In this document: one piece after another, positions 1 to 14,520 of the stretch | Numbering within the stretch: the stretch's first letter is position 1 | How the letters are laid out: each line of letters starts with the position of its first letter | Source: Monocercomonoides exilis PA203 | Lineage: Eukaryota; Protista; Preaxostyla | NCBI GenBank assembly: GCA_001643675.2 | Contig: LSRY02000012.1 | Coordinates: 1-64,000, forward strand | Length of the DNA: 64,000 nucleotides | Direction: 5' to 3' | Notes under the pieces: model-generated | What the model was told of the DNA's origin: nothing | What the model saw: only the letters and a program-made list of their open reading frames with translations | Database searches by the model: none | Translations under genes and position numbers: made by a program

Positions 1-3000
1 CCCTAACCCTACCTCTAACCCTAACCCTAACCCTAACCCTAACCCTAACCCTAACCCTAACCCTAACCCTAACCTAACCCTAACCCTCTAACCCTAACCC
101 CTAACCCTAACCCTAACCCTAACCCTAACCCTAACCCTAACTCTAGTTTTTGAACCCTAACCCTAACCCTAACCCTAACCCTAACCCTAACCCTAACCCC
201 AACCTCAACCCTAACCCTAACCCTAACCCTAACCCTAACCCTAACCCTAACCTAACCCTAACCCTAACCCTAACCCTAACCCTAACCCTAACCCTAACCC
301 TAACCTAACCCCTACTTAACCCTAACCTAACCCCTAACCCTAACCCTAACCTAACCCTAACCCTAACCCTAACCCTAACCCTAACCCTAACCCTTAACCC
401 TAACCCTAACCCTAACCTAGTTTGAACTCCTAACCCTAACCCTAACCCTAACCTAACCCCTAACCCTAACCCCAACCCTAACCCTAACCCTAACCCTAAC
501 CTAACCCTAACCCTAACCCTAACCCTAACCCTAACCCTAACCCTAACCCTAACCCTAACCCTAACCCTAACCCTAACCCCTAACCCTAACCCTAACCCTA
601 ACCCTAACCCTAACCCTAGTTTAACCCTAACCCTAACCCTAACCCTAACCCTAACCCTAACCCTAACCCTAACCCTAACCCTAACCCTAACCCTAACCCT
701 AACCCTAACCCTAACCCTAACTCTAACCCTAACCCCCTAACCCTAACCCTAACCCTAACCCTAACCCTAACCCTAACCCTAACCCTAACCCTAACCCTAA
801 CCCTAACCCTAACCCTAACCCTAACCCTAACCCTAACCCTAACCCTAACCCTAACCCTAACCCTAACCCTAACCCTAACCCTAACCCTAACCCTAACCCT
901 AACCCTAACCCTAACCTAACCCTAACCCTAACCCTAACCCTAACCCTAACCCTAACCCTAACCCTAACCCTAACCCTAACCCTAACCCTAACCCTAACCC
1001 TAACCCTAACCCTAACCCTAACCCTAACCCTAACCCCTAACCCTAACCCTAACCCTAACCTAACCCTAACCCTAACCCTAACCCTAACCCTAACCCTAAC
1101 CCTAACCCTAACCCTAACCCTAACCCTAACCCTAACCCTAACCCTAACCCTAACCCTAACCCTAACCCTAACCCTAACCCTAACCCTAACCCTAACCCTA
1201 ACCCTAACCCTAACCCTAACCCTAACCCTAACCCTAACCCTAACCCTAACCCTAACCCTAACCCTAACCTAACCCTAACCCTAACCCTAACCCTAACCCT
1301 AACCCTAACCCTAACCCTAACCCTAACCCTAACCCTAACCCTAACCCTAACCCTAACCCTAACCCTAACCCTAACCCTAACCCTAACCCTAACCCTAACC
1401 CTAACCCTAACCCTAACCCTAACCCTAACCCTAACCCTAACCCTAACCCTAACCCTAACCCTAACCCTAACCCTAACCCTAACCCTAACCCTAACCCTAA
1501 CCCTAACCCTAACCCTAACCCTAACCCTAACCCTAACCCTAACCCTAACCCTAACCCTAACCCTAACCCTAACCTAACCTAACCCTAACCCTAACCCTAA
1601 CCCTAACCCTAACCCTAACCCTAACCCTAACCCTAACCCTAACCCTAACCCTAACCCTAACCCTAACCCTAACCCTAACCCTAACCCTAACCCTAACCCT
1701 AACCCTAACCCTAACCCTAACCCTAACCTAACCCTAACCCTAACCCTAACCCTAACCCTAACCCTAACCCTAACCCTAACCCTAACCCTAACCCTAACCC
1801 TAACCCTAACCCTAACCCTAACCCTAACCCTAACCCTAACCCTAACCCTAACCCTAACCCTAACCCTAACCCTAACCCTAACCCTAACCCTAACCCTAAC
1901 CCTAACCCTAACCCTAACCCTAACCCTAACCCTAACCCTAACCCTAACCCTAACCCTAACCCTAACCCTAACCCTAACCCTAACCCTAACCCTAACCCTA
2001 ACCCTAACCCTAACCCTAACCCTAACCCTAACCCTAACCCTAACCCTAACCCTAACCCTAACCCTAACCCTAACCCTAACCCTAACCCTAACCCTAACCT
2101 AACCCTAACCCTAACCCTAACCCTAACCCTAACCCTAACCCTAACCCTAACCCTAACCCTAACCCTAACCCTAACCTAACCCTAACCCTAACCCTAACCC
2201 TAACCCTAACCCTAACCCTAACCCTAACCCTAACCCTAACCCTAACCCTAACCCTAACCCTAACCCTAACCCTAACCCTAACCCTAACCCTAACCCTAAC
2301 CCTAACCCTAACCCTAACCTAACCCTAACCCTAACCCTAACCCTAACCCTAACCCTAACCCTAACCCTAACCCTAACCCTAACCCTAACCCTAACCCTAA
2401 CCCTAACCCTAACCCTAACCTAACCCTAACCCTAACCCTAACCCTAACCCTAACCCTAACCCTAACCCCTAACCCTAACCCTAACCCTAACCCTAACCCT
2501 AACCCTAACCCTAACCCTAACCCTAACCCTAACCCTAACCCTAACCCTAACCCTAACCCTAACCCTAACCCTAACCCTAACCCTAACCCTAACCCTAACC
2601 CTAACCCTAACCCTAACCCTAACCCTAACCCTAACCCTAACCCTAACCCTAACCCTAACCCTAACCCTAACCCTAACCCTAACCCTAACCCTAACCCTAA
2701 CCCTAACCCTAACCCTAACCCTAACCCTAACCCTAACCCTAACCCTAACCCTAACCCTAACCCTAACCCTAACCCTAACCCTAACCCTAACCCTAACCCT
2801 AACCCTAACCCTAACCCTAACCCTAACCCTAACCCTAACCCTAACCCTAACCCTAACCCTAACCCTAACCCTAACCCTAACCCTAACCCTAACCCTAACC
2901 CTAACCCTAACCCTAACCCTAACCCTAACCCTAACCCTAACCCTAACCCTAACCCTAACCCTAACCCTAACCCTAACCCTAACCCTAACCCTAACCCTAA

Positions 3001-3566
3001 CCCTAACCCTAACCCTAACCCTAACCCTAACCCTAACCCTAACCCTAACCCTAACCCTAACCCTAACCCTAACCCTAACCCTAACCCTAACCTAACCCTA
3101 ACCCTAACCCTAACCCTAACCCTAACCTAACCCTAACCCTAACCCTAACCCTAACCCTAACCCTAACCCTAACCCTAACCCTAACCCTAACCCTAACCCT
3201 AACCCTAACCCTAACCCTAACCCTAACCCTAACCCTAACCCTAACCCTAACCCTAACCCTAACCCTAACCCCTAACCCTAACCCTACCCTAACCCTAACC
3301 CTAACCCTAACCCTAACCCTAACCCTAACCCTAACCCTAACCCTAACCCTAACCCTAACCCTAACCTAACCCTAACCCTAACCCTAACCCTAACCCTAAC
3401 CCTAACCCTAACCCTAACCCTAACCCTAACCTAACCTAACCTAACCCTAACCCTAACCCTAACCCTAACCCTAACCCTAACCCTAACCCTAACCCTAACC
3501 CTAACCTAACCCTAACCTAACCTAACCCTAACCCTAACCCTAACCTAACCCTAACCCTAACCTAAC
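1..3566 (+). repeat. Telomere, (CCCTAA)n / (TTAGGG)n terminal array
   Basis: Near-continuous CCCTAA repeats from base 1 to ...cctaac|atct at 3566. C-rich strand on + as expected for a left chromosome end. Scattered CCTAA/CCCCTAA variants and three CTAGTTT interruptions. Confidence 0.99.
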
Positions 3567-3644
3567 ATCTCTTCTTGAATGTTTAATTCGAAATCGGAAT
3601 TTGTTTTTGTCCCACACAAGAATAGTCCTAAAACTTTTAACAGG

Positions 3645-4012
3645 ACTATGCCAAAATTTTCATCGGTTCTTCCAAAGGGTTTGTCATGTTTTATTTTTTA
3701 TTTTCATTCAAATTAATCATATTCTTTCTATTTTCAAACAATACTATGCCGGATTTTTCTCATTTTTTGTCTGTTTTTTTATTGATTTTTTAACTCTTTG
3801 GAATGACTATGCTGAATTTTTGATATTTTTTGGTTGTTATTTTCTCATTTTTATTCTCTCCTTGGGATGACTATGCTCAAATTTTCATTTTTTTCGGTTC
3901 TTTTTTCTGTCAATTTGTTCCCTCCTTGGGAAAACTCTGCTGAATTTTTGATTTTTTTGGGTTGATTTTCTGGTGATTTTTCAGAGGAGAACAAGACTAT
4001 GCCGGAATTTTC
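3645..4012 (+). repeat. Degenerate ~63-bp tandem array carrying an ACT(A/C)TGC(C/T) motif followed by a T-tract
   Basis: Motif starts at 3645, 3743, 3806, 3870, 3934 and 3996 (spacings 98, 63, 64, 64, 62). The last copy supplies the ATG at 3999. Confidence 0.8.
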
Positions 4013-6665
4013 CGAAACAGGTCTCCCTCCTTCTGCTTCAGTTTCTTCTTCTTGGCGTCCTTCAGCTTCTGCTTCTGCTTCTTCAACTTCGACTTCGACT
4101 GTCTTAAGTGAATCTTCATCTTCGCCATCATTGCCATCATCATCATCTTCATCTTCGACAAAAGTGGAAAATCTTTGGTTCAGCCCTCCAAAGAAAAGTC
4201 TGTGGAAGAAAATTTCTGAAATGGAGGAAAAGAATTTTGAAGGAGTGGAAGAGAGGAAGGAGATGGAAATAGTGGATAAGGATAAGAAGAAAGAAAGGAA
4301 AGGGAGAGGCGGGATGAATGAAAAGAACAAAAAGAAGGGAAAGAAAGGAAAGAAAGGAAGGATATCGGGGTTATTGAAAAGGAAGAAGGAAGTCAAATTG
4401 AGAGAGGTTGTTCTGGTGGATGAGTCTGAAATTGAAGATGAGGAGAAGGATGATTCAGATAATCAAAGGTTCTCTATTCAAACGCTATCTTCTGATTCAT
4501 CAGATTCTTACACTTCTTCTGATTCTTCGGTTGAGCTTGCCTTCAACATACCCACTTTCACTCAACTGAATGGAAATTCAATGGAAAGTCAGAGCAGAGA
4601 AAATGATTTCCTTGGGTTGGACAATCACCCACCCTTGTTGAGATCCATATCTTCAATGTCATCATCAACATCTCCATCTTCTTCTCAAACAGTCACAGCC
4701 GATATGAGTGACTGGGAAATACAGCAATCAATGAAAGAGAAACAGAGTGAATGCAGCCCAAGAAGATGCAGAGCATTGAATTTGATGAGAACAATGACTG
4801 ATGAGGAACTGAACGAGCTGGATGTTGCTGGTCCGATCTATAGTGAAAGTACGTTGAAAAAGCATGAATACGTTGAAGACATTTATATAACTTTCTGCAA
4901 TATGAGAAGAATACCAGCATACCCATTGGATACCAGGAATGCCGCGTCTTTTCTTCGGTTCTTATATCGATCTCGTTGTTATGTTCGTGCTTCTATTGAG
5001 AATGTGTTTGCTTGCTCTCTGAAGCGAATTGAGTCAATGAGGACGGGAGTACCTGTCTCAGCCGAGGTCAGTCAGTCAATTGCAAATGTGCTTCAAGAGG
5101 GGCGTATTGACAAGTCAGTGAAGGATAGTGGAAATGGAAAAGAACCTTGTCTGCTATGTGATGTTGCTCGGATCATCTCAAAAACAAATGACCTTTCACC
5201 TTCCAAAGCCATGGAAGCTTCTCTATGGTTGGTGGCTATCTTCACTGGAGCAAGAGCAGTCACAATGTGGAATGTGCTGGTTGGAGACATTGGTGCACTC
5301 ATTCCTTCTGAGTCGGGTGATACTCTCATCCTCAAAATCAATTTGAGAGTGACAAAGGGCAATCCACACTGGAACCACACAATTTCGCTGGAAGGAACAT
5401 TGGATGAGAGGAATGACTTGAATGTGTTATATTGGTTGAATCAACATCTGATTCAGACTTTCAGTTTGGATCTGAGAGAGATAGAATCTTGGGTTTTGAA
5501 TGAGGATTTGAAATTTCGAAGGTTGTGGGATTTAAACAGAGATGCAATGTCCCAACGTCTTCGTCGTCGTGCTCAGGATGCTGGGTACCCACACGATCTC
5601 TTTTCATTTCACTCATTCAGAAGTGGATTCATGTGCTCCGCCATTCTTGCCTCCGGTGTTGATGCACATTCAAGGGATTCGACATACATCTTCACTGCTG
5701 CTATTGCTGGCTGGATTCCAAATTCGAAGGTTCAAAACAGATATTCAAAACCAGCCATCACTGGGACCATCGTCACCAATAGAATCATAACCTCGAAAAT
5801 CTCCAATGAGGTTGTTGACACTTCTCTCATCAATCCTGAAGCGTTCCATAATATCAGGTTCAACAATGACATTGAGCATAATGTGAGTGAGAGAACTGCA
5901 GTTTTATGGGTTCGGAGAGCATTCAAAGAGAGAATCAATGTTGAGAGAGTGACATCGACGACTGCAAAGAAAACAGAAGAAAAGAGAAAATTGTATAAAC
6001 AGAGAGCTTGGAAGGATGCTGTGTCAAGATATGTGTTGAGTGATGATGACATGGAAAGAGAGGCAAAGGAGATTTACACTCAACATCCCAACTACAAAAA
6101 CATTCATAGTCGAAGTTCAACCATGACTAATGTTCGAGTGGATGTTGGTATTCGTCATCTCAACGAGAGGTACTATGATGAAGGTGAGAAATTGGATGAT
6201 ATTGTGGAAGATTTACTTAGGTTTGTGGAGGATGAGGTGGATGGGACAAAAGAGATGAAACAACACAACAGAAAAAAACCCTGTCCATATGAACATGCTT
6301 TGCACAGGGAAGTCGATGATCATGGTCACAGAAAACGAATACCATGGACGGAAGAGGAAGATCAGAAATTGAGAGAAATGCATTCTGAAAAGAAAAGGTT
6401 AGTTGAGATGGCTGCGGAGTTACCTAATCGAATGCCAAGAGATTGCAGAGACAGACTTAGAAATTTGGGGGTTATTGATAATTGGAAGAATGAAGGCATG
6501 ACGAAGAAAAAGATGAGAAGAAGAAAAACGATCATGAAAGATGATGATGATACTGATGATGATGAAACTGAAGAAATCGATGAAAATGATGGGTTGGAAG
6601 AAAAAATGAAAAAAAGAAATACCAAAGAAAGAAAAATTGAAATCAATTTTGATGATGAAAAATAA
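3999..6665 (+). CDS. Tyrosine recombinase (Cre/DIRS/Crypton-like) with C-terminal Myb/SANT (telobox-like) domain
   Basis: 888-aa intronless ORF. Core-binding-type segment (STLKKHEYVEDIYITFC...ASFLRFL), TGAR (R419), VTKG (K453), FHSFRSG (H538/R541), IAGW (W572), NRY (Y582). C-terminal RKRIPWTEEEDQKL...PNRMPRDCRDRLRNL. The true start may be a downstream Met. Confidence 0.88.
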   Translation: MPEFSETGLPPSASVSSSWRPSASASASSTSTSTVLSESSSSPSLPSSSSSSSTKVENLWFSPPKKSLWKKISEMEEKNFEGVEERKEMEIVDKDKKKERKGRGGMNEKNKKKGKKGKKGRISGLLKRKKEVKLREVVLVDESEIEDEEKDDSDNQRFSIQTLSSDSSDSYTSSDSSVELAFNIPTFTQLNGNSMESQSRENDFLGLDNHPPLLRSISSMSSSTSPSSSQTVTADMSDWEIQQSMKEKQSECSPRRCRALNLMRTMTDEELNELDVAGPIYSESTLKKHEYVEDIYITFCNMRRIPAYPLDTRNAASFLRFLYRSRCYVRASIENVFACSLKRIESMRTGVPVSAEVSQSIANVLQEGRIDKSVKDSGNGKEPCLLCDVARIISKTNDLSPSKAMEASLWLVAIFTGARAVTMWNVLVGDIGALIPSESGDTLILKINLRVTKGNPHWNHTISLEGTLDERNDLNVLYWLNQHLIQTFSLDLREIESWVLNEDLKFRRLWDLNRDAMSQRLRRRAQDAGYPHDLFSFHSFRSGFMCSAILASGVDAHSRDSTYIFTAAIAGWIPNSKVQNRYSKPAITGTIVTNRIITSKISNEVVDTSLINPEAFHNIRFNNDIEHNVSERTAVLWVRRAFKERINVERVTSTTAKKTEEKRKLYKQRAWKDAVSRYVLSDDDMEREAKEIYTQHPNYKNIHSRSSTMTNVRVDVGIRHLNERYYDEGEKLDDIVEDLLRFVEDEVDGTKEMKQHNRKKPCPYEHALHREVDDHGHRKRIPWTEEEDQKLREMHSEKKRLVEMAAELPNRMPRDCRDRLRNLGVIDNWKNEGMTKKKMRRRKTIMKDDDDTDDDETEEIDENDGLEEKMKKRNTKERKIEINFDDEK

Positions 6666-7701
6666 ACTTTTTTATTACCTTTTGATTTGAATTTTTATTG
6701 GTTTTTGATTTTTTCTATATAGTCATTGTTTTCCGAAATATTGTATTTTCATTTGGCTTTGCCAAGTTATACCCAATTAATTTCCTTTTTATTTAATTTT
6801 TATTTTTTTAACTTTTTTTATTTTGAAATATCAAAGGTCAGATGAAATTGATGTTAATCTTTCATCGAACGACCAATATTTTTGATATTTTTCACTCTTG
6901 ATATTATTCGATTTTATTGAGGTTTATTGAATGTTTTTCAATAACACATTGATATTTTTCATAAATTTTCAGATTAAAATAAATAATCCAGATTAATTGA
7001 ATTCTCTTTTTTCATAGAAAATGGTCATTTTCTTGGATTGAAATATCAAATAAAATAACAAAAATCATTCATATTTCTAAATTACATAAAGTGAAGATTT
7101 TCATTGGTTATTCATAATCATGATATTCAACAATGAAAATATCAATTCAGTCATGAAAATATTGTTGGGTTAACAACATTCTCAAATACAACATGTTTAT
7201 TGAATCTCAATCAAATTCATCAATCTCTTTGGGTTAGATGTCATTCATTTTCTCTTCATGTTCAAAGAACAAACATGATCATTTTCAAATGTTCATATGA
7301 CAACGCCAATTCACTCTGCGCAATAAATAACTCACATTCATCTTGTTCTGTTTGATTTTCATTGGTTGCATTCGATTAGCATTTCATGTCAAATAAAACA
7401 CTTTTGAAATAAATCTCAAAATTTGACAGAAATATTCGATGGTTATCTGCAAAACATTAATCGACACATTCTAACCTAGTTTGAATATTCGATGGTTGGT
7501 GTCATTCATAACAACCACAAAACATACACAATAACCTCATAAATATTCTCATTCTCATCTATGAAATACTTTGAAAATATCAAAATGGATATTTGTTGGT
7601 TCAATAAAGAATTTTCTCCTAATGAATTTTTGACATCATGTGGGTTCACAAAATTCCTACATATTCTAACCTGAAAGATTTTTTTGGGGGCAGAGTAGTA
7701 C

Positions 7702-7739
7702 CCCTAACCCTAACCTAACCTAACCCTAACCCTAACCTA
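7702..7739 (+). repeat. Interstitial telomeric tract with CCTAA variants
   Basis: ccctaaccctaacctaacctaaccctaaccctaaccta, followed by g (forming CTAG). Confidence 0.95.
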
Positions 7740-7874
7740 GTGAAAAAATCGAAAAAATGAAAATTTTCAGGTTCGCTTCCAAAATGAAAATATCAACTTG
7801 ATACACCAAAATCAAGTTTTGGATGGTAGTATAGTTGCGCTAAGAGGGAAAACCACAGGTTTTCCCACGGCTGA

Positions 7875-7894
7875 CCTAACCCTAACCTAACCTA
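7875..7894 (+). repeat. Second short interstitial telomeric tract
   Basis: cctaaccctaacctaaccta, 8 bp after a perfect 9-bp hairpin (gggaaaacc-aca-ggttttccc, 7846-7866). Confidence 0.85.
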
Positions 7895-12974: not shown

Positions 12975-13818
12975 TTTAATTGGACAATATTCAGAGTTAA
13001 GCCTCAGTAAATCGTGCAAACAAAACACTCTGAGACGCACAGCCCTCTGATAACAAGGATTCGTCTAATCCGTCCTTCTCAGGCATGACCCCTTTACCAA
13101 TATTCTCATTTATCTTTACAATAGCCAGGCATATGGTCCAGCAGATGAAACGATTAATTCCAAACTAATGAAATCCGTTTAAATACATCTACCAAATGTT
13201 TTTATTGGACCAACCGTTCCGGCCAAATCTTTCAAAGGCGGTACAACCAATCCTTCAAGATCCTCGACTTGGAAATAAAATATCTCAATTTCCTTATAAA
13301 TTTACTCCCTTGCAAAGCAGTATAATATAGAATCTCAGTCTATATACCAACTTCGATCCACAAGGCATTTAAAGGAGATACAAGACCCATCACAATATAT
13401 TCTAGTCATATATGTTATTCTACAGCTCACCTGGAAGATACGACCCCATTTACACACATCCCATTACAGGATCTTCCCTTATCCAATCGTCGCCGACCGT
13501 AGATAGGAGGGTTGTCAAATATCCTCGATGGCCATGGTCTTAATTTCCATATCTCTATTTTTATCAAAAATCAATTCTTTCCTTTGCAGGAAACATGCCC
13601 AGGAGATTATCAATATAATCCTTCAATTGTCTTAATTATAAAAATTCTGGAATAGATTCTGACTTAGAGGCGTTCAGTCATAATCTAACGTATGGTAGCT
13701 TCGCGGCACTAGTTTCTCAACTAACCGCAAATGCCAATTATACGATTCTAGGGTTCCTCTCGTACTTACTAGAATTACCATCTTGACAATATTATACTTA
13801 ATCAGTAGGGTAAAACTA

Positions 13819-13856
<38 letters not shown>

Positions 13857-13980
13857 TGTTAGTGGGTGAACAATCCAACACTTGGCGAATTCTGCTTCGC
13901 AATGATAGGAAGAGCCGACATCGAAGAATCAAAAAGCAACGTCGCTATGAACGCTTGGCTGCCACAAGCCAGTTATCCCT
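12975..13980 (-). rRNA. 28S (LSU) rRNA 3'-terminal fragment, 5'-truncated
   Basis: Reverse complement reads GGGATAACTGGCTTGTGGCAGCCAAGCGTTCATAGCGACGTTGC...TCGATGTCGGCTCTTCC...GAGCTGGGTTTAGACCGTCGCGAGACAGGTTAG. Sarcin-ricin loop AGTACGAGAGGAAC at 13753-13766, GCCTCTAAGTCAGAATC at 13655-13671, terminal ACGATTTACTGAGG near 13000-13015. The 3' end is approximate. Confidence 0.95.
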
Positions 13981-14520
13981 ATCACTCACAAGTTGCAAAG
14001 TGGATTACTGCTGTGTAATTTCTTGAGAGGCATCTGACTAATCTTTCATTATTTATGGTTTGGAAAAAAATTTTTTGAAAGGCAAGAACATATAGATATG
14101 TTATATTGTTATCAGACCAGGTTATGGTGAGGAAAGAAACAAGTGTTTTCTGTTTTGACTGATAATTTTCTTATATTTTATCCAAAAATTCTTATCTCCA
14201 CGAAAAGCCAAGGGAATAACCTGATTATATGACTGATAACAGTATTCTTCATAACTTATTTAACATATATATTTTAATATGAAACGAAAGTTCTGATCAA
14301 AATTTCAAAAAAATCATTTCATAGATATAATTCCAACAGGTCAAAACAACGCTTCGCTAATTTCTTTTCACATTCTTAATTAAAATTGTCAAAAATTGGC
14401 GCATATTTTAATGATATTATTCTCTTCAACATATTATAAATAGTCTAAAAGTCATACAAGGTCATCTTCTATATTTTTGTGAAAAGTAATATTTGTTAAA
14501 AATGAAATGTTTTTGTAAAG

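Follow-up and report, generated by a model that had tools for sequence, protein, structure and literature searches.

A tyrosine recombinase-Myb gene family at the chromosome ends of Monocercomonoides exilis: a possible telomere-specific, Crypton-like DNA element

Known chromosome-end elements and the window locus

To our knowledge, all of the telomere-specific mobile elements known are retroelements. The Y' element of yeast is a multikilobase coding unit that occurs in fixed orientation at many chromosome ends, with short internal telomere tracts between tandem units and between the unit and the sequence inside it; its product is a helicase, and its spread depends on homologous recombination. 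Telomere-associated Penelope-like elements (PLEs) reside at chromosome ends, carry a telomere tract at their inner end, are truncated from the telomere side, and form head-to-tail stacks (PMC4522978). Cryptons are eukaryotic elements that have a tyrosine recombinase (YR) as their sole enzyme and lack TIRs and LTRs (Goodwin 2003; Kojima & Jurka 2011, PMC3212892). The short direct repeats at both ends of Cryptons are presumed to be the recombination substrate, a circular intermediate has been proposed, and CryptonF elements have an added C-terminal DNA-binding domain (PMC3212892). No telomere-specific Crypton, YR, or DNA element was found in the published literature searched, which does not prove that none has been described.

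The window, which is the entire 64,000-nucleotide stretch analyzed here, begins with a terminal telomere array. The first open reading frame (ORF) inside this array is intact and encodes 888 amino acids, and its ATG lies 431 bp past the last telomere unit, matching the 430 bp given in an earlier reading of the sequence alone (Table 1). Elements of the family to which it belongs are approximately 4.1 to 4.5 kb long and contain a single ORF. Like Cryptons, the window element encodes a YR and no reverse transcriptase (RT) or other transposase. It differs from them in that its DNA-binding domain is a Myb repeat rather than GCR1_C or DUF3504, in that its flanking direct repeats are telomere repeats, and in that its copies form eroded stacks restricted to chromosome ends. 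It is called Crypton-like here without comparison to Crypton reference sequences. End residence, fixed orientation, an inner tract, truncation, and stacks with telomere repeats between units are features in common with the PLE Athena/Terminons, HeT-A/TART, and TRAS/SART elements; however, those elements encode and need an RT, whereas the window family has a YR and no RT. Also in contrast to telomeric retroelements, the polarity of its gene relative to the telomere varies by subfamily. The family resembles yeast Y' in its end location, fixed orientation, and short internal telomere tracts but encodes a site-specific recombinase, is diverse (24 to 77% identity), and occurs in many organisms.

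Table 1. Features of the outermost element, its gene, and the neighboring telomere-end sequence in the window
Feature	Position (nt)	Strand	Remarks
Terminal telomere array (CCCTAA)n	1..3567	.	Contains 5-nt CCTAA variant units plus a few GTTTGAA-type interruptions
Telomere-side noncoding element end	3568..3998	+	Window copy
64-bp tandem repeat	3743-3971		Approximately 3.4 units immediately 5' of the ATG, in the telomere-side noncoding end
Intact 888-aa ORF	3999..6665	+	Ser/Lys-rich low-complexity N terminus (aa 1-260) followed by the YR core, a helical linker, the Myb repeat, and an acidic/basic tail
YR core	4782..5918	+	aa 262-640; helical core-binding domain (N-terminal) and catalytic domain
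YR catalytic codons	R419 5253-5255; K453 5355-5357; H538 5610-5612
YR catalytic codons	R541 5619-5621; W572 5712-5714; Y582 5742-5744
Single Myb/SANT-type helix-turn-helix repeat	6342..6467	+	aa 782-823; helix 3 = RDCRDRLRNL; three-helix model
Noncoding inner (3') element region	6666..7700	+	Ends ...GCAGAGTAGTA
15-mer CTAACCTAGTTTGAA	7464-7478		In the inner noncoding region of the window copy
Short interstitial telomere tract	7701..7737	+	Inner boundary of the window element; units of 7, 6, 5, 5, 6, and 6 nt
137-bp remnant	7738..7874	+	Inner end of an older C58-subfamily element; telomere side truncated
Second short telomere tract	7875..7893	+	Inner boundary of the older remnant
Outer end of element			TTTTTTATAAAC...

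Recombinase and Myb domains of the window protein

Pfam (E of ≤1) and NCBIfam called no recombinase domain in the window protein, and its recognition therefore required a family profile and structure prediction. The profile of alignment A2, which contains 34 sequences including metagenome homologs, matched Cre (E of 9e-4) and XerD, with R419 aligned to R173 of Cre and the HxxR region to XerD. An AF2 model of the YR (pLDDT 88.8, pTM 0.76), in which K453 is placed in a beta-hairpin, was searched against the PDB with Foldseek; the top 31 matches were all Cre/Tre (E of 4e-9, probability of 1.0, TM of 0.51 to 0.62), followed by lambda Int, IntI (IntI4), XerH, and XerA. By this model the window protein carries a two-domain Cre-type YR fold, as the sequence-only reading had anticipated. 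That reading had also picked out six YR catalytic residues in order, and all of them (R419, K453, H538, R541, W572, and Y582) are invariant both in alignment A1 of 19 paralogs (24 to 77% identity) and in A2, where they occupy columns 158, 192, 277, 280, 311, and 321. Among the 34 family members, 13 match Pfam Phage_integrase (PF00589) at an E of ≤0.1 (best, 1.2e-6), and one relative (P0101) scores 36.2 bits against a cutoff of 27.1. The predicted two-domain fold and the R-K-H-R-W-Y set, with W at the fifth position as in Cre, are common to Cre, lambda Int, and Xer, whereas the window YR is just 15 to 17% identical to these enzymes, is found in a eukaryotic chromosomal context, and belongs to a protein that bears a Myb repeat and is extended at both termini by long low-complexity segments of eukaryotic type.

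The profiles of other eukaryotic YR groups gave no matches. DUF3435, the Starship captain domain, was not detected in the window protein (E of ≤1) or in the 34 members, and captain identity was rejected on that basis; DUF3504, which is Crypton derived, and GCR1_C likewise had no match in the window protein or the 34 members. DIRS, Ngaro, and VIPER identities were rejected because there is no RT domain and because a 4.5-kb unit with a 2.7-kb YR ORF is too short. Membership in RT-bearing DIRS elements would have refuted the sequence-only interpretation, and no RT was found in any copy, flank, paralog, or relative examined, where Pfam finds only Myb or integrase domains.

The window ORF is under purifying selection, with dN/dS values of 0.15 to 0.17 in comparisons with three other intact copies (dS of 0.7 to 1.0) and lower values of 0.05 to 0.13 in the YR core, so that the features of the gene go well beyond chance. 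It could still be supposed, from the lack of a recombinase call by Pfam and NCBIfam, that this is an ordinary single-copy host gene or a decaying pseudogene that adjoins the telomere by accident and whose YR-like residues are coincidental. That supposition is scarcely credible, being refuted by the high-confidence Cre fold, the invariant catalytic residues, the approximately 109 paralogous segments located at chromosome ends, and the purifying selection.

Pfam Myb_DNA-binding (PF00249) matches a single repeat at aa 782-823 of 888 (E of 7.5e-8; 32.8 bits against a cutoff of 24.4), close to the aa ~779-823 proposed from the sequence alone, and the position of this repeat near the C terminus is kept across paralogs and relatives. 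The sequence-only reading had further expected the repeat to rank as a TRF-type telobox above generic Myb, and this expectation failed. Profile A3 scored c-Myb R1 to R3 at 34 to 43 bits, and c-Myb repeats together with TvMYB21 at 31 to 43 bits per repeat, versus 29 to 31 bits for TRF1/TRF2; a Foldseek search with the Myb domain placed c-Myb R1/R2 and Trichomonas (Tv) Myb first, with TRF1 at rank 19 and TRF2 at rank 32. Because c-Myb-type repeats outrank TRF1/TRF2 by both profile and fold, classification of the window Myb repeat as a telobox was rejected as unproven; the domain cannot be told apart from generic c-Myb-type repeats. A helix-3 motif that resembles the telobox consensus, RTNVDCKDRWRNL, is clear only in the relatives (A3 alignment). 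TRF1, TRF2, Taz1, and TRB likewise have a single Myb repeat near the C terminus, but the window protein lacks TRFH or any other telomere-protein domain. With the telobox ranking failed and the motif clear in relatives alone, steering of the recombinase to telomeric DNA by the Myb domain remains an inference, for which there are no TTAGGG-binding data. For binding of duplex TTAGGG, the sole support is indirect and comes from the genomic proximity of the family to telomere repeats.

Subtelomeric copies and their telomere-tract borders

A profile search of the M. exilis genome identified 109 matching segments, approximately 96 of which (about 88%) lie within 50 kb of contig ends; the segments away from known ends all contain stops or are fragmentary. 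The family amounts to roughly ninety mobile-element copies, almost all at chromosome ends and bordered by telomere repeats, although for most copies only 1.5 kb of flank was examined. Dispersal of homologs to internal loci, which would have told against the proposed tie between recombinase and telomere, was thus not observed, and the question of whether copies sit near telomeric repeats is answered by an almost wholly subtelomeric family. The copies are stacked terminal insertions, with the oldest innermost. On C25, an intact copy at 5 kb is followed by copies at 7, 10, 15, and 21 kb that show more and more disruption, and in the window an older remnant with its own tract (7738-7893) lies immediately inside the intact element, the remnant being 98.7% identical to the 3' end of the C58 copy. 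Relatives also occur outside this genome. There were 1,038 homolog clusters at an E of ≤1e-3, and the metagenome homologs are 35 to 42% identical and retain the combination of YR and Myb domains. On 10 of 11 external contigs the gene has nearby tracts of (TTAGGG)2-4 or of the TTTAGGG type, in some cases on both sides or stacked, which extends the association with short telomere tracts to unrelated relatives.

The inner end of the element (...CATGCACAGTTGGTC) sharply abuts a telomere tract, past which the sequence is different in at least six copies. In group A copies this tract always opens with units of 7, 6, 5, and 5 nt (CCCCTAA CCCTAA CCTAA CCTAA); the terminal arrays show this order of units at 1% of their registers. 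The window copy opens in the same way despite having a unique tail: homology of its inner region with other close copies extends as far as ~7040, and the remaining 660 bp (7041-7700) have no match elsewhere in the genome. The identity of this start with that of all other group A copies indicates an element-borne tract. Tract length is 16 to 17 nt in subfamily B and 35 to 76 nt in group A. Random integration into kilobase-long arrays predicts variable tracts, and the near-fixed tracts observed may mean that only very short telomeres are targeted or that another route is used.

At the other end of the element, copies are capped by telomere repeats at differing points, including the window, C30, C100, and C39 copies and, within the ORF, the C21, C58, and C49 copies. 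Just two copies, C30 and C57, provide evidence of a complete outer end, and that of C57 adjoins non-telomeric DNA. The window copy is short of approximately 25 to 30 bp that both of these have (starting TTTTTTATAAACTTG...) and has thus been slightly eroded and recapped. Telomere repeats in the same orientation are present on both sides of the window, C39, C100, and C49 copies and of the external L033 and L037 copies; the crossover sequence is undetermined. Telomere healing junctions were also seen in which ...AC is joined to TAGGTTAGGG. The terminal arrays themselves contain 100 identical, scattered copies of the interruption CCTA-GTTTGAA-CCCTAA; a templated telomerase variant fits these at least as well as a recombinase footprint does, and they are not used as evidence.

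A domesticated or host-tolerated subtelomeric family comparable to yeast Y', spread by homologous recombination or break-induced replication from the tracts and with a YR that serves the host in telomere recombination, end repair, or resolution of fusions, would also place its copies strictly at ends with short internal telomere tracts as borders. Such an origin would suit the strong, long-lasting purifying selection on copies at dS values of 0.7 to 1.0 and the few copies per lineage. Two further observations favor it: C100 and C49 share a flank beyond the tract, which points to end-to-end copying, and a 12-unit tandem array of the element inner end adjoins the C26 telomere. On the other hand, the sequence past the tract is unrelated in most copies, the termini are sharp and conserved, and truncated, decayed copies are numerous. 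The YR-plus-Myb gene is also found with telomere tracts, some of them of the TTTAGGG type, on small contigs of many organisms, a distribution more usual for a mobile element than for the gene of one host. We regard a Y'-like origin as unlikely, with the qualification that it and the mobile-element interpretation are not mutually exclusive.

Group A copies have exactly the geometry of telomere-adding retroelements. This leaves room for nonautonomous terminal retro-addition, in which a transcript ending in C-strand repeats would anneal to the G-overhang and be copied in trans by telomerase or another RT, as for Penelope-like Athena elements, with the YR being secondary. The 3' tract pointing away from the telomere, the 5' truncation, and the head-to-tail stacks are those of telomere-associated PLEs, and the fixed tract pattern looks as if it were templated. 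However, no RT is present in or beside any copy or relative examined, and the inner end has no poly(A). Moreover, the gene of subfamily B, like that of most metagenome relatives, is opposite to the tract, reading toward the telomere with the fixed 16- to 17-nt tract upstream, so that telomere-side truncation removes the 3' end of the gene. The terminal motif is conserved with respect to the tract rather than the gene, with ACCAAC directly following the tract in four lineages and in both polarities; the polarity of the element is set by its tract and not by its gene. Retro-addition is accordingly given little credence here. Many but not all termini also have an inverted CCCTAA-like motif after the tract, and its identification as a lox-like core site is suggestive only.

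Proposed mode of movement and implications for subtelomeres

The explanation that we favor, as probable though far from settled, is that positions 3568-7737 of the window are the outermost copy of a Crypton-like, YR-only, telomere-specific DNA element that moves by integration of a circle. In the proposed mechanism, the element would exist briefly as a circle in which its telomere-repeat tract lies beside the conserved terminal sequence. The recombinase, aided by the Myb domain, the core-binding domain, or both, would pair the circle's tract with chromosomal telomere repeats and join the circle to the chromosome by conservative site-specific recombination, and excision might also be possible. 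In a variant of this scheme, a short overhang at the chromosome end would prime on the tract of the circle. By either route the element would come to lie between an inner, element-borne tract and the outer telomere, after which end erosion would trim its telomere-side end, telomerase would recap it, and new copies would enter outside old ones. Subtelomeres would consequently consist of stacked copies that are older and more decayed the farther in they lie. Four elements of this scheme are inferred without read data, namely, the circular intermediate, recombination within the tract, binding of telomere DNA by the Myb domain, and excision with reintegration; neither circle junctions nor empty sites nor polymorphic insertions have been seen.

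The sequence-only reading had proposed a recombinase tied to telomeric DNA, acting either as integrase for a DNA transposon that targets telomeres or as a domesticated telomere/rDNA recombination enzyme. The former is supported by the Cre fold, the subtelomeric family, the tract-bounded ends, the absence of an RT, and the relatives; nothing was found to support a role in rDNA recombination. A broader proposal, which we offer tentatively and as somewhat short of probable, is that these elements represent an undescribed and widespread superfamily of telomere-repeat-specific, Myb-guided YR DNA transposons that builds essentially all of the M. exilis subtelomeres and possibly buffers or backs up end maintenance as a counterpart of HeT-A/TART in Drosophila. 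Such a role may follow from the fact that only copies that move outward escape erosion.

If the DNA-element interpretation is correct, the use of a site-specific YR to live among telomere repeats would represent a new means of safe-haven targeting, and the enzyme would be a natural eukaryotic recombinase with a universal, multicopy chromosomal target. It would account for the makeup of the M. exilis subtelomeres and for unclassified repeats in the genome paper, and it would give a name to more than 1,000 protein clusters now annotated as hypothetical. The family would also bear on the coevolution of telomeres, recombination, and mobile DNA.

Recombinase and Myb domains of the protein family

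The sequence-only reading had proposed that the first gene inside the telomere, the latter occupying window bases 1 to 3567 as (CCCTAA)n, encodes a tyrosine recombinase (YR) fused to a telobox-like Myb domain and steered to telomeric DNA. Neither Pfam nor NCBIfam called a recombinase domain in the window protein, so the YR claim required a separate test. A six-frame search of the M. exilis genome (82.3 Mb, 101 contigs) identified more than 50 paralogs with 28 to 77% identity. In an alignment of 19 paralogs, the six catalytic residues named in that reading (R419, K453, H538, R541, W572, and Y582, numbered on the window protein) are invariant and occupy the classic motifs TGARA, KG..W.H, FHSxRSGF, AGW, and Y.K; they are still invariant in a 34-sequence alignment to which 21 metagenome homologs had been added. 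The best PDB matches of the profile of this second alignment are to Cre (E 9e-4), where the core-binding domain and Arg I align, and to XerD over the HxxR region. An AlphaFold model of aa 262 to 640 built on the same alignment has a pLDDT of 88.8 and places K453 in a beta-hairpin. Foldseek returned the Cre-type fold that had been anticipated, with Cre or Tre structures as the best 31 matches (E 4e-9, probability 1.0), ahead of lambda integrase, IntI4, XerH, and XerA. Pfam Phage_integrase is matched at E<=0.1 by 13 of the 34 family members (best, 1.2e-6), and none of the 34 matches DUF3435 or DUF3504. The recombinase in this family is real.

The predicted single C-terminal Myb repeat was recovered in the window protein by Pfam, and it is kept at the same C-terminal position in the paralogs and in all of the metagenome homologs. 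Helix 3 reads RTNVDCKDRWRNL in many relatives, close to the telobox consensus, and RMPRDCRDRLRNL in the window copy. The family Myb profile scored 31 to 43 bits with single c-Myb repeats and Trichomonas MYB21 versus 29 to 31 bits with TRF1 and TRF2. The predicted fold (three helices, pLDDT 79) matches c-Myb R1/R2 and Trichomonas Myb2/3 first; TRF1 ranks 19th and TRF2 32nd. Because generic Myb repeats outrank TRF1 and TRF2 in both profile and fold, the expectation that TRF would stand above generic Myb fails. The Myb repeat is real, its identity as a telobox is not established, and its DNA specificity cannot be read from the profile and fold data.

Chromosomal positions and structure of the copies

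A near-complete census of the genome by profile search (174 candidates, 108 scored) yielded 109 matching segments. For approximately 96 of these a contig end is no more than 50 kb away, versus approximately 12% expected under an even spread; contig ends were estimated from telomere matches and contig extents, the extents being partly inferred. Segments away from known ends are all fragments or carry in-frame stops. Several copies per end are common at many chromosome ends, with the intact copy outermost. On contig C25, copies lie at 5.2 kb (intact), 7.4 kb (1 stop), 10 kb (broken), 15.4 kb (10 stops), and 21 kb (3 stops), and contig C1 shows a similar trend.

Most copies were viewed with 1.5-kb flanks only. 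Close copies of group A, in which the gene points away from the telomere, are 72 to 80% identical in DNA, and the sequence they have in common runs from the 5' leader as far as a sharply defined inner end 1.0 to 1.4 kb beyond the stop codon. This end reads ...CATGCACAGTTGGTC and is directly adjoined by a short tract of telomere repeats, oriented as in the telomere itself. The flank past the tract is different in at least six copies and common only to those on C100 and C49. The opening units of the tract are always 7, 6, 5, and 5 nt (CCCCTAA CCCTAA CCTAA CCTAA), a pattern found at 1% of registers in terminal arrays. It is also present in the window copy, though the final 660 bp of that copy (7041-7700) are unique in the genome, and the inner tract is nearly identical in the C67 lineage (46% identity). 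Since the pattern is constant, rare in arrays, and kept in the window copy and the C67 lineage, the tract belongs to the element. The full unit is approximately 4.5 kb with one ORF, and its telomere-side end varies between copies. In the window, the order of tract, remnant, and tract shows stacked terminal insertions with erosion in between.

Features of the window copy and of related copies (named by contig)
Feature	Position	Strand	Description
YR-Myb ORF	3999-6665	+	Intact, 888 aa, first ORF; ATG 431 bp inside telomere
Myb_DNA-binding repeat	aa 782-823 of window protein	+	Pfam E 7.5e-8, one repeat
Inner tract of window copy	7701-7737		
Remnant beyond window inner tract			137 bp; inner end of C58-type element, 98.7% identical
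Second tract in window	7875-7893		After 137-bp remnant
Telomere-side end, C30 and C57			Start TTTTTTATAAACTTG...
Telomere-side end, window and C55 copies			~25 bp missing
Telomere-side end, C100 and C39			120-200 bp missing
Telomere-side end, C21 / C58 / C49	aa 482 / 328 / 497		Cut within ORF; telomere caps directly
Segments away from known ends	C22 cluster 1.15-1.17 Mb; C30:385805; C40:581707; C44:449679; C52:123537; C59:125804; C15		All broken or fragmentary

The YR ATG is immediately preceded by a 64-bp tandem repeat (window 3743-3971, approximately 3.4 copies, 75% matches), which also occurs in other close copies and may be a promoter or binding array. The complete outer end of the C57 copy (L003:40-110, telomere side) adjoins non-telomeric DNA including tRNA-like sequence, with approximately 2.3 kb of other sequence between element and telomere and no tract at that junction. 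Directly beside the C26 telomere (C26:1190954-1202647) are 12 tandem units of approximately 1060 bp, each comprising the group-A inner end and a degenerate tract (CCCCTAACAATAA); this array could be a satellite or a mini-element derived from the end of the element. The window also contains an isolated eukaryotic LSU rRNA fragment (13484-14046, minus strand), approximately 10 kb from the telomere, that matches the 3' part of Rfam RF02543 (375.7 bits).

In subfamily B (loci L023 to L030, 24 to 28% identity), the gene reads toward the telomere. The tract is a fixed 16 to 17 nt, (T)TAGG TTAGGG TTAGGG, located 420 to 630 bp upstream of the ORF, and flanks differ among copies of one lineage. The telomere-truncated copies on C60 and C72 have lost the 3' end of the gene. 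Whichever direction the gene takes, it is thus always the telomere-side end that is truncated and the inner end that has the tract. This geometry argues for a DNA-level mechanism: it is expected if inserted DNA erodes from the chromosome end, but not from incomplete reverse transcription. It also bears on retro-addition in trans. The group-A arrangement would permit such addition, as in the description of PLEs (PMC4522978), but it is disfavoured by the polarity of subfamily B and by the absence of a reverse transcriptase, none of which was found by protein-domain search in the paralogs and relatives examined.

Read on the G strand, the tract is followed by ACCAAC in the close A family, one B lineage, and two metagenome lineages, and many termini have an inverted CCCTAA-like motif 7 to 30 nt further in. 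Together these motifs are suggestive of a recombinase site, which is not proven.

Telomere arrays have a recurrent interruption, CCCTAACCTA-GTTTGAA-CCCTAA (window 141-154, 417-428, and 617-624). The exact 23-mer has 100 genome copies versus 0 for the reversed control, all in terminal arrays and in telomere orientation at approximately 60 chromosome ends. Where telomere tracts meet the sequence on their inner side, many junctions also read ...AC followed by TAGGTTAGGG. Interruption and junction, both unexplained, may reflect a variant templated by telomerase or a signature of healing, as opposed to a scar left by the recombinase. A 15-mer of the interruption (CTAACCTAGTTTGAA) recurs in the unique 3' tail of the element (7464-7478), within an approximately 52-bp segment with direct repeats of ATATTCGATGGTT on either side (7427-7494).

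Models of mobility and maintenance

The best-supported interpretation is a YR-only DNA mobile element with specificity for telomeric repeats, resembling Cryptons in the genes it carries. Cryptons are described as encoding a YR with a C-terminal DNA-binding domain, lacking TIRs, and having 4- to 6-bp direct repeats as recombination substrates (PMC3212892). In the M. exilis element, telomere units would take the place of these direct repeats. By inference, a circle would carry the telomere tract and recombine through it with chromosomal telomere repeats, and the Myb domain, for which there are no binding data, may help in targeting. The inner tracts are short and nearly fixed, but random insertion into kilobase-long arrays predicts otherwise. 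Integration at very short telomeres would be a better fit, as would a short chromosome-end overhang priming on the tract of the circle (roll-and-spread); the C26 array of inner ends is compatible with the latter variant.

Among four intact close copies, dS is 0.7 to 1.0 (0.15 for C57 versus C100) and dN/dS is 0.15 to 0.17 overall, 0.05 to 0.13 in the YR core, and 0.07 to 0.13 in the C-terminal part. These lineages are old, have remained functional, and each comprise few copies. The pattern fits a conservative excise-and-integrate element forced to keep moving to escape erosion and fits a host-retained gene just as well; a Y'-like family spread by recombination, possibly domesticated, is a rival to the mobile element. 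The M. exilis ONT assembly paper, which reports contigs capped by telomeres and 35% unclassified repeats, does not mention the recombinase family (PMC8767320), and no telomere-specific Crypton or YR-Myb element was found in the literature searched.

Homologs in metagenomes

A word-indexed search found the 21 metagenome proteins (31 to 42% identity), and in an exhaustive HMM search 1038 cluster representatives reached E<=1e-3, 249 of them E<=1e-30. Homologs beyond M. exilis are on contigs from metagenomes or Logan. One is labelled as belonging to a bacterial MAG; this protein (P0017, Rhizomicrobium sp., partial) is probably from a eukaryotic contig that was mis-binned with bacterial sequence. 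In another relative, P0101 (2064 aa, on a 7498-bp metagenome contig), the predicted protein begins with a ubiquitin hydrolase (UCH, E 3.7e-37) fused to the YR, and Phage_integrase is matched a second time at 1844-1986; the fusion may be a gene-call merger of adjacent genes.

The YR and the C-terminal Myb repeat are kept in all relatives checked. Short telomere-type tracts occur 0.3 to 2.2 kb from the gene in 10 of 11 contigs examined, with one on each side in L033 and several stacked segments bounded by tracts in L037; the chance expectation for a 12-mer tract is approximately 6e-4 per 5 kb. Most are described by (TTAGGG)2-4, with TTTAGGG-type tracts in L035 (417-454) and L040 (6606-6618), and these two sequences suggest hosts with a different telomere repeat, whose type the tracts would follow. 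Association with telomere repeats is therefore a property of the protein family as a whole and not of a single genome.
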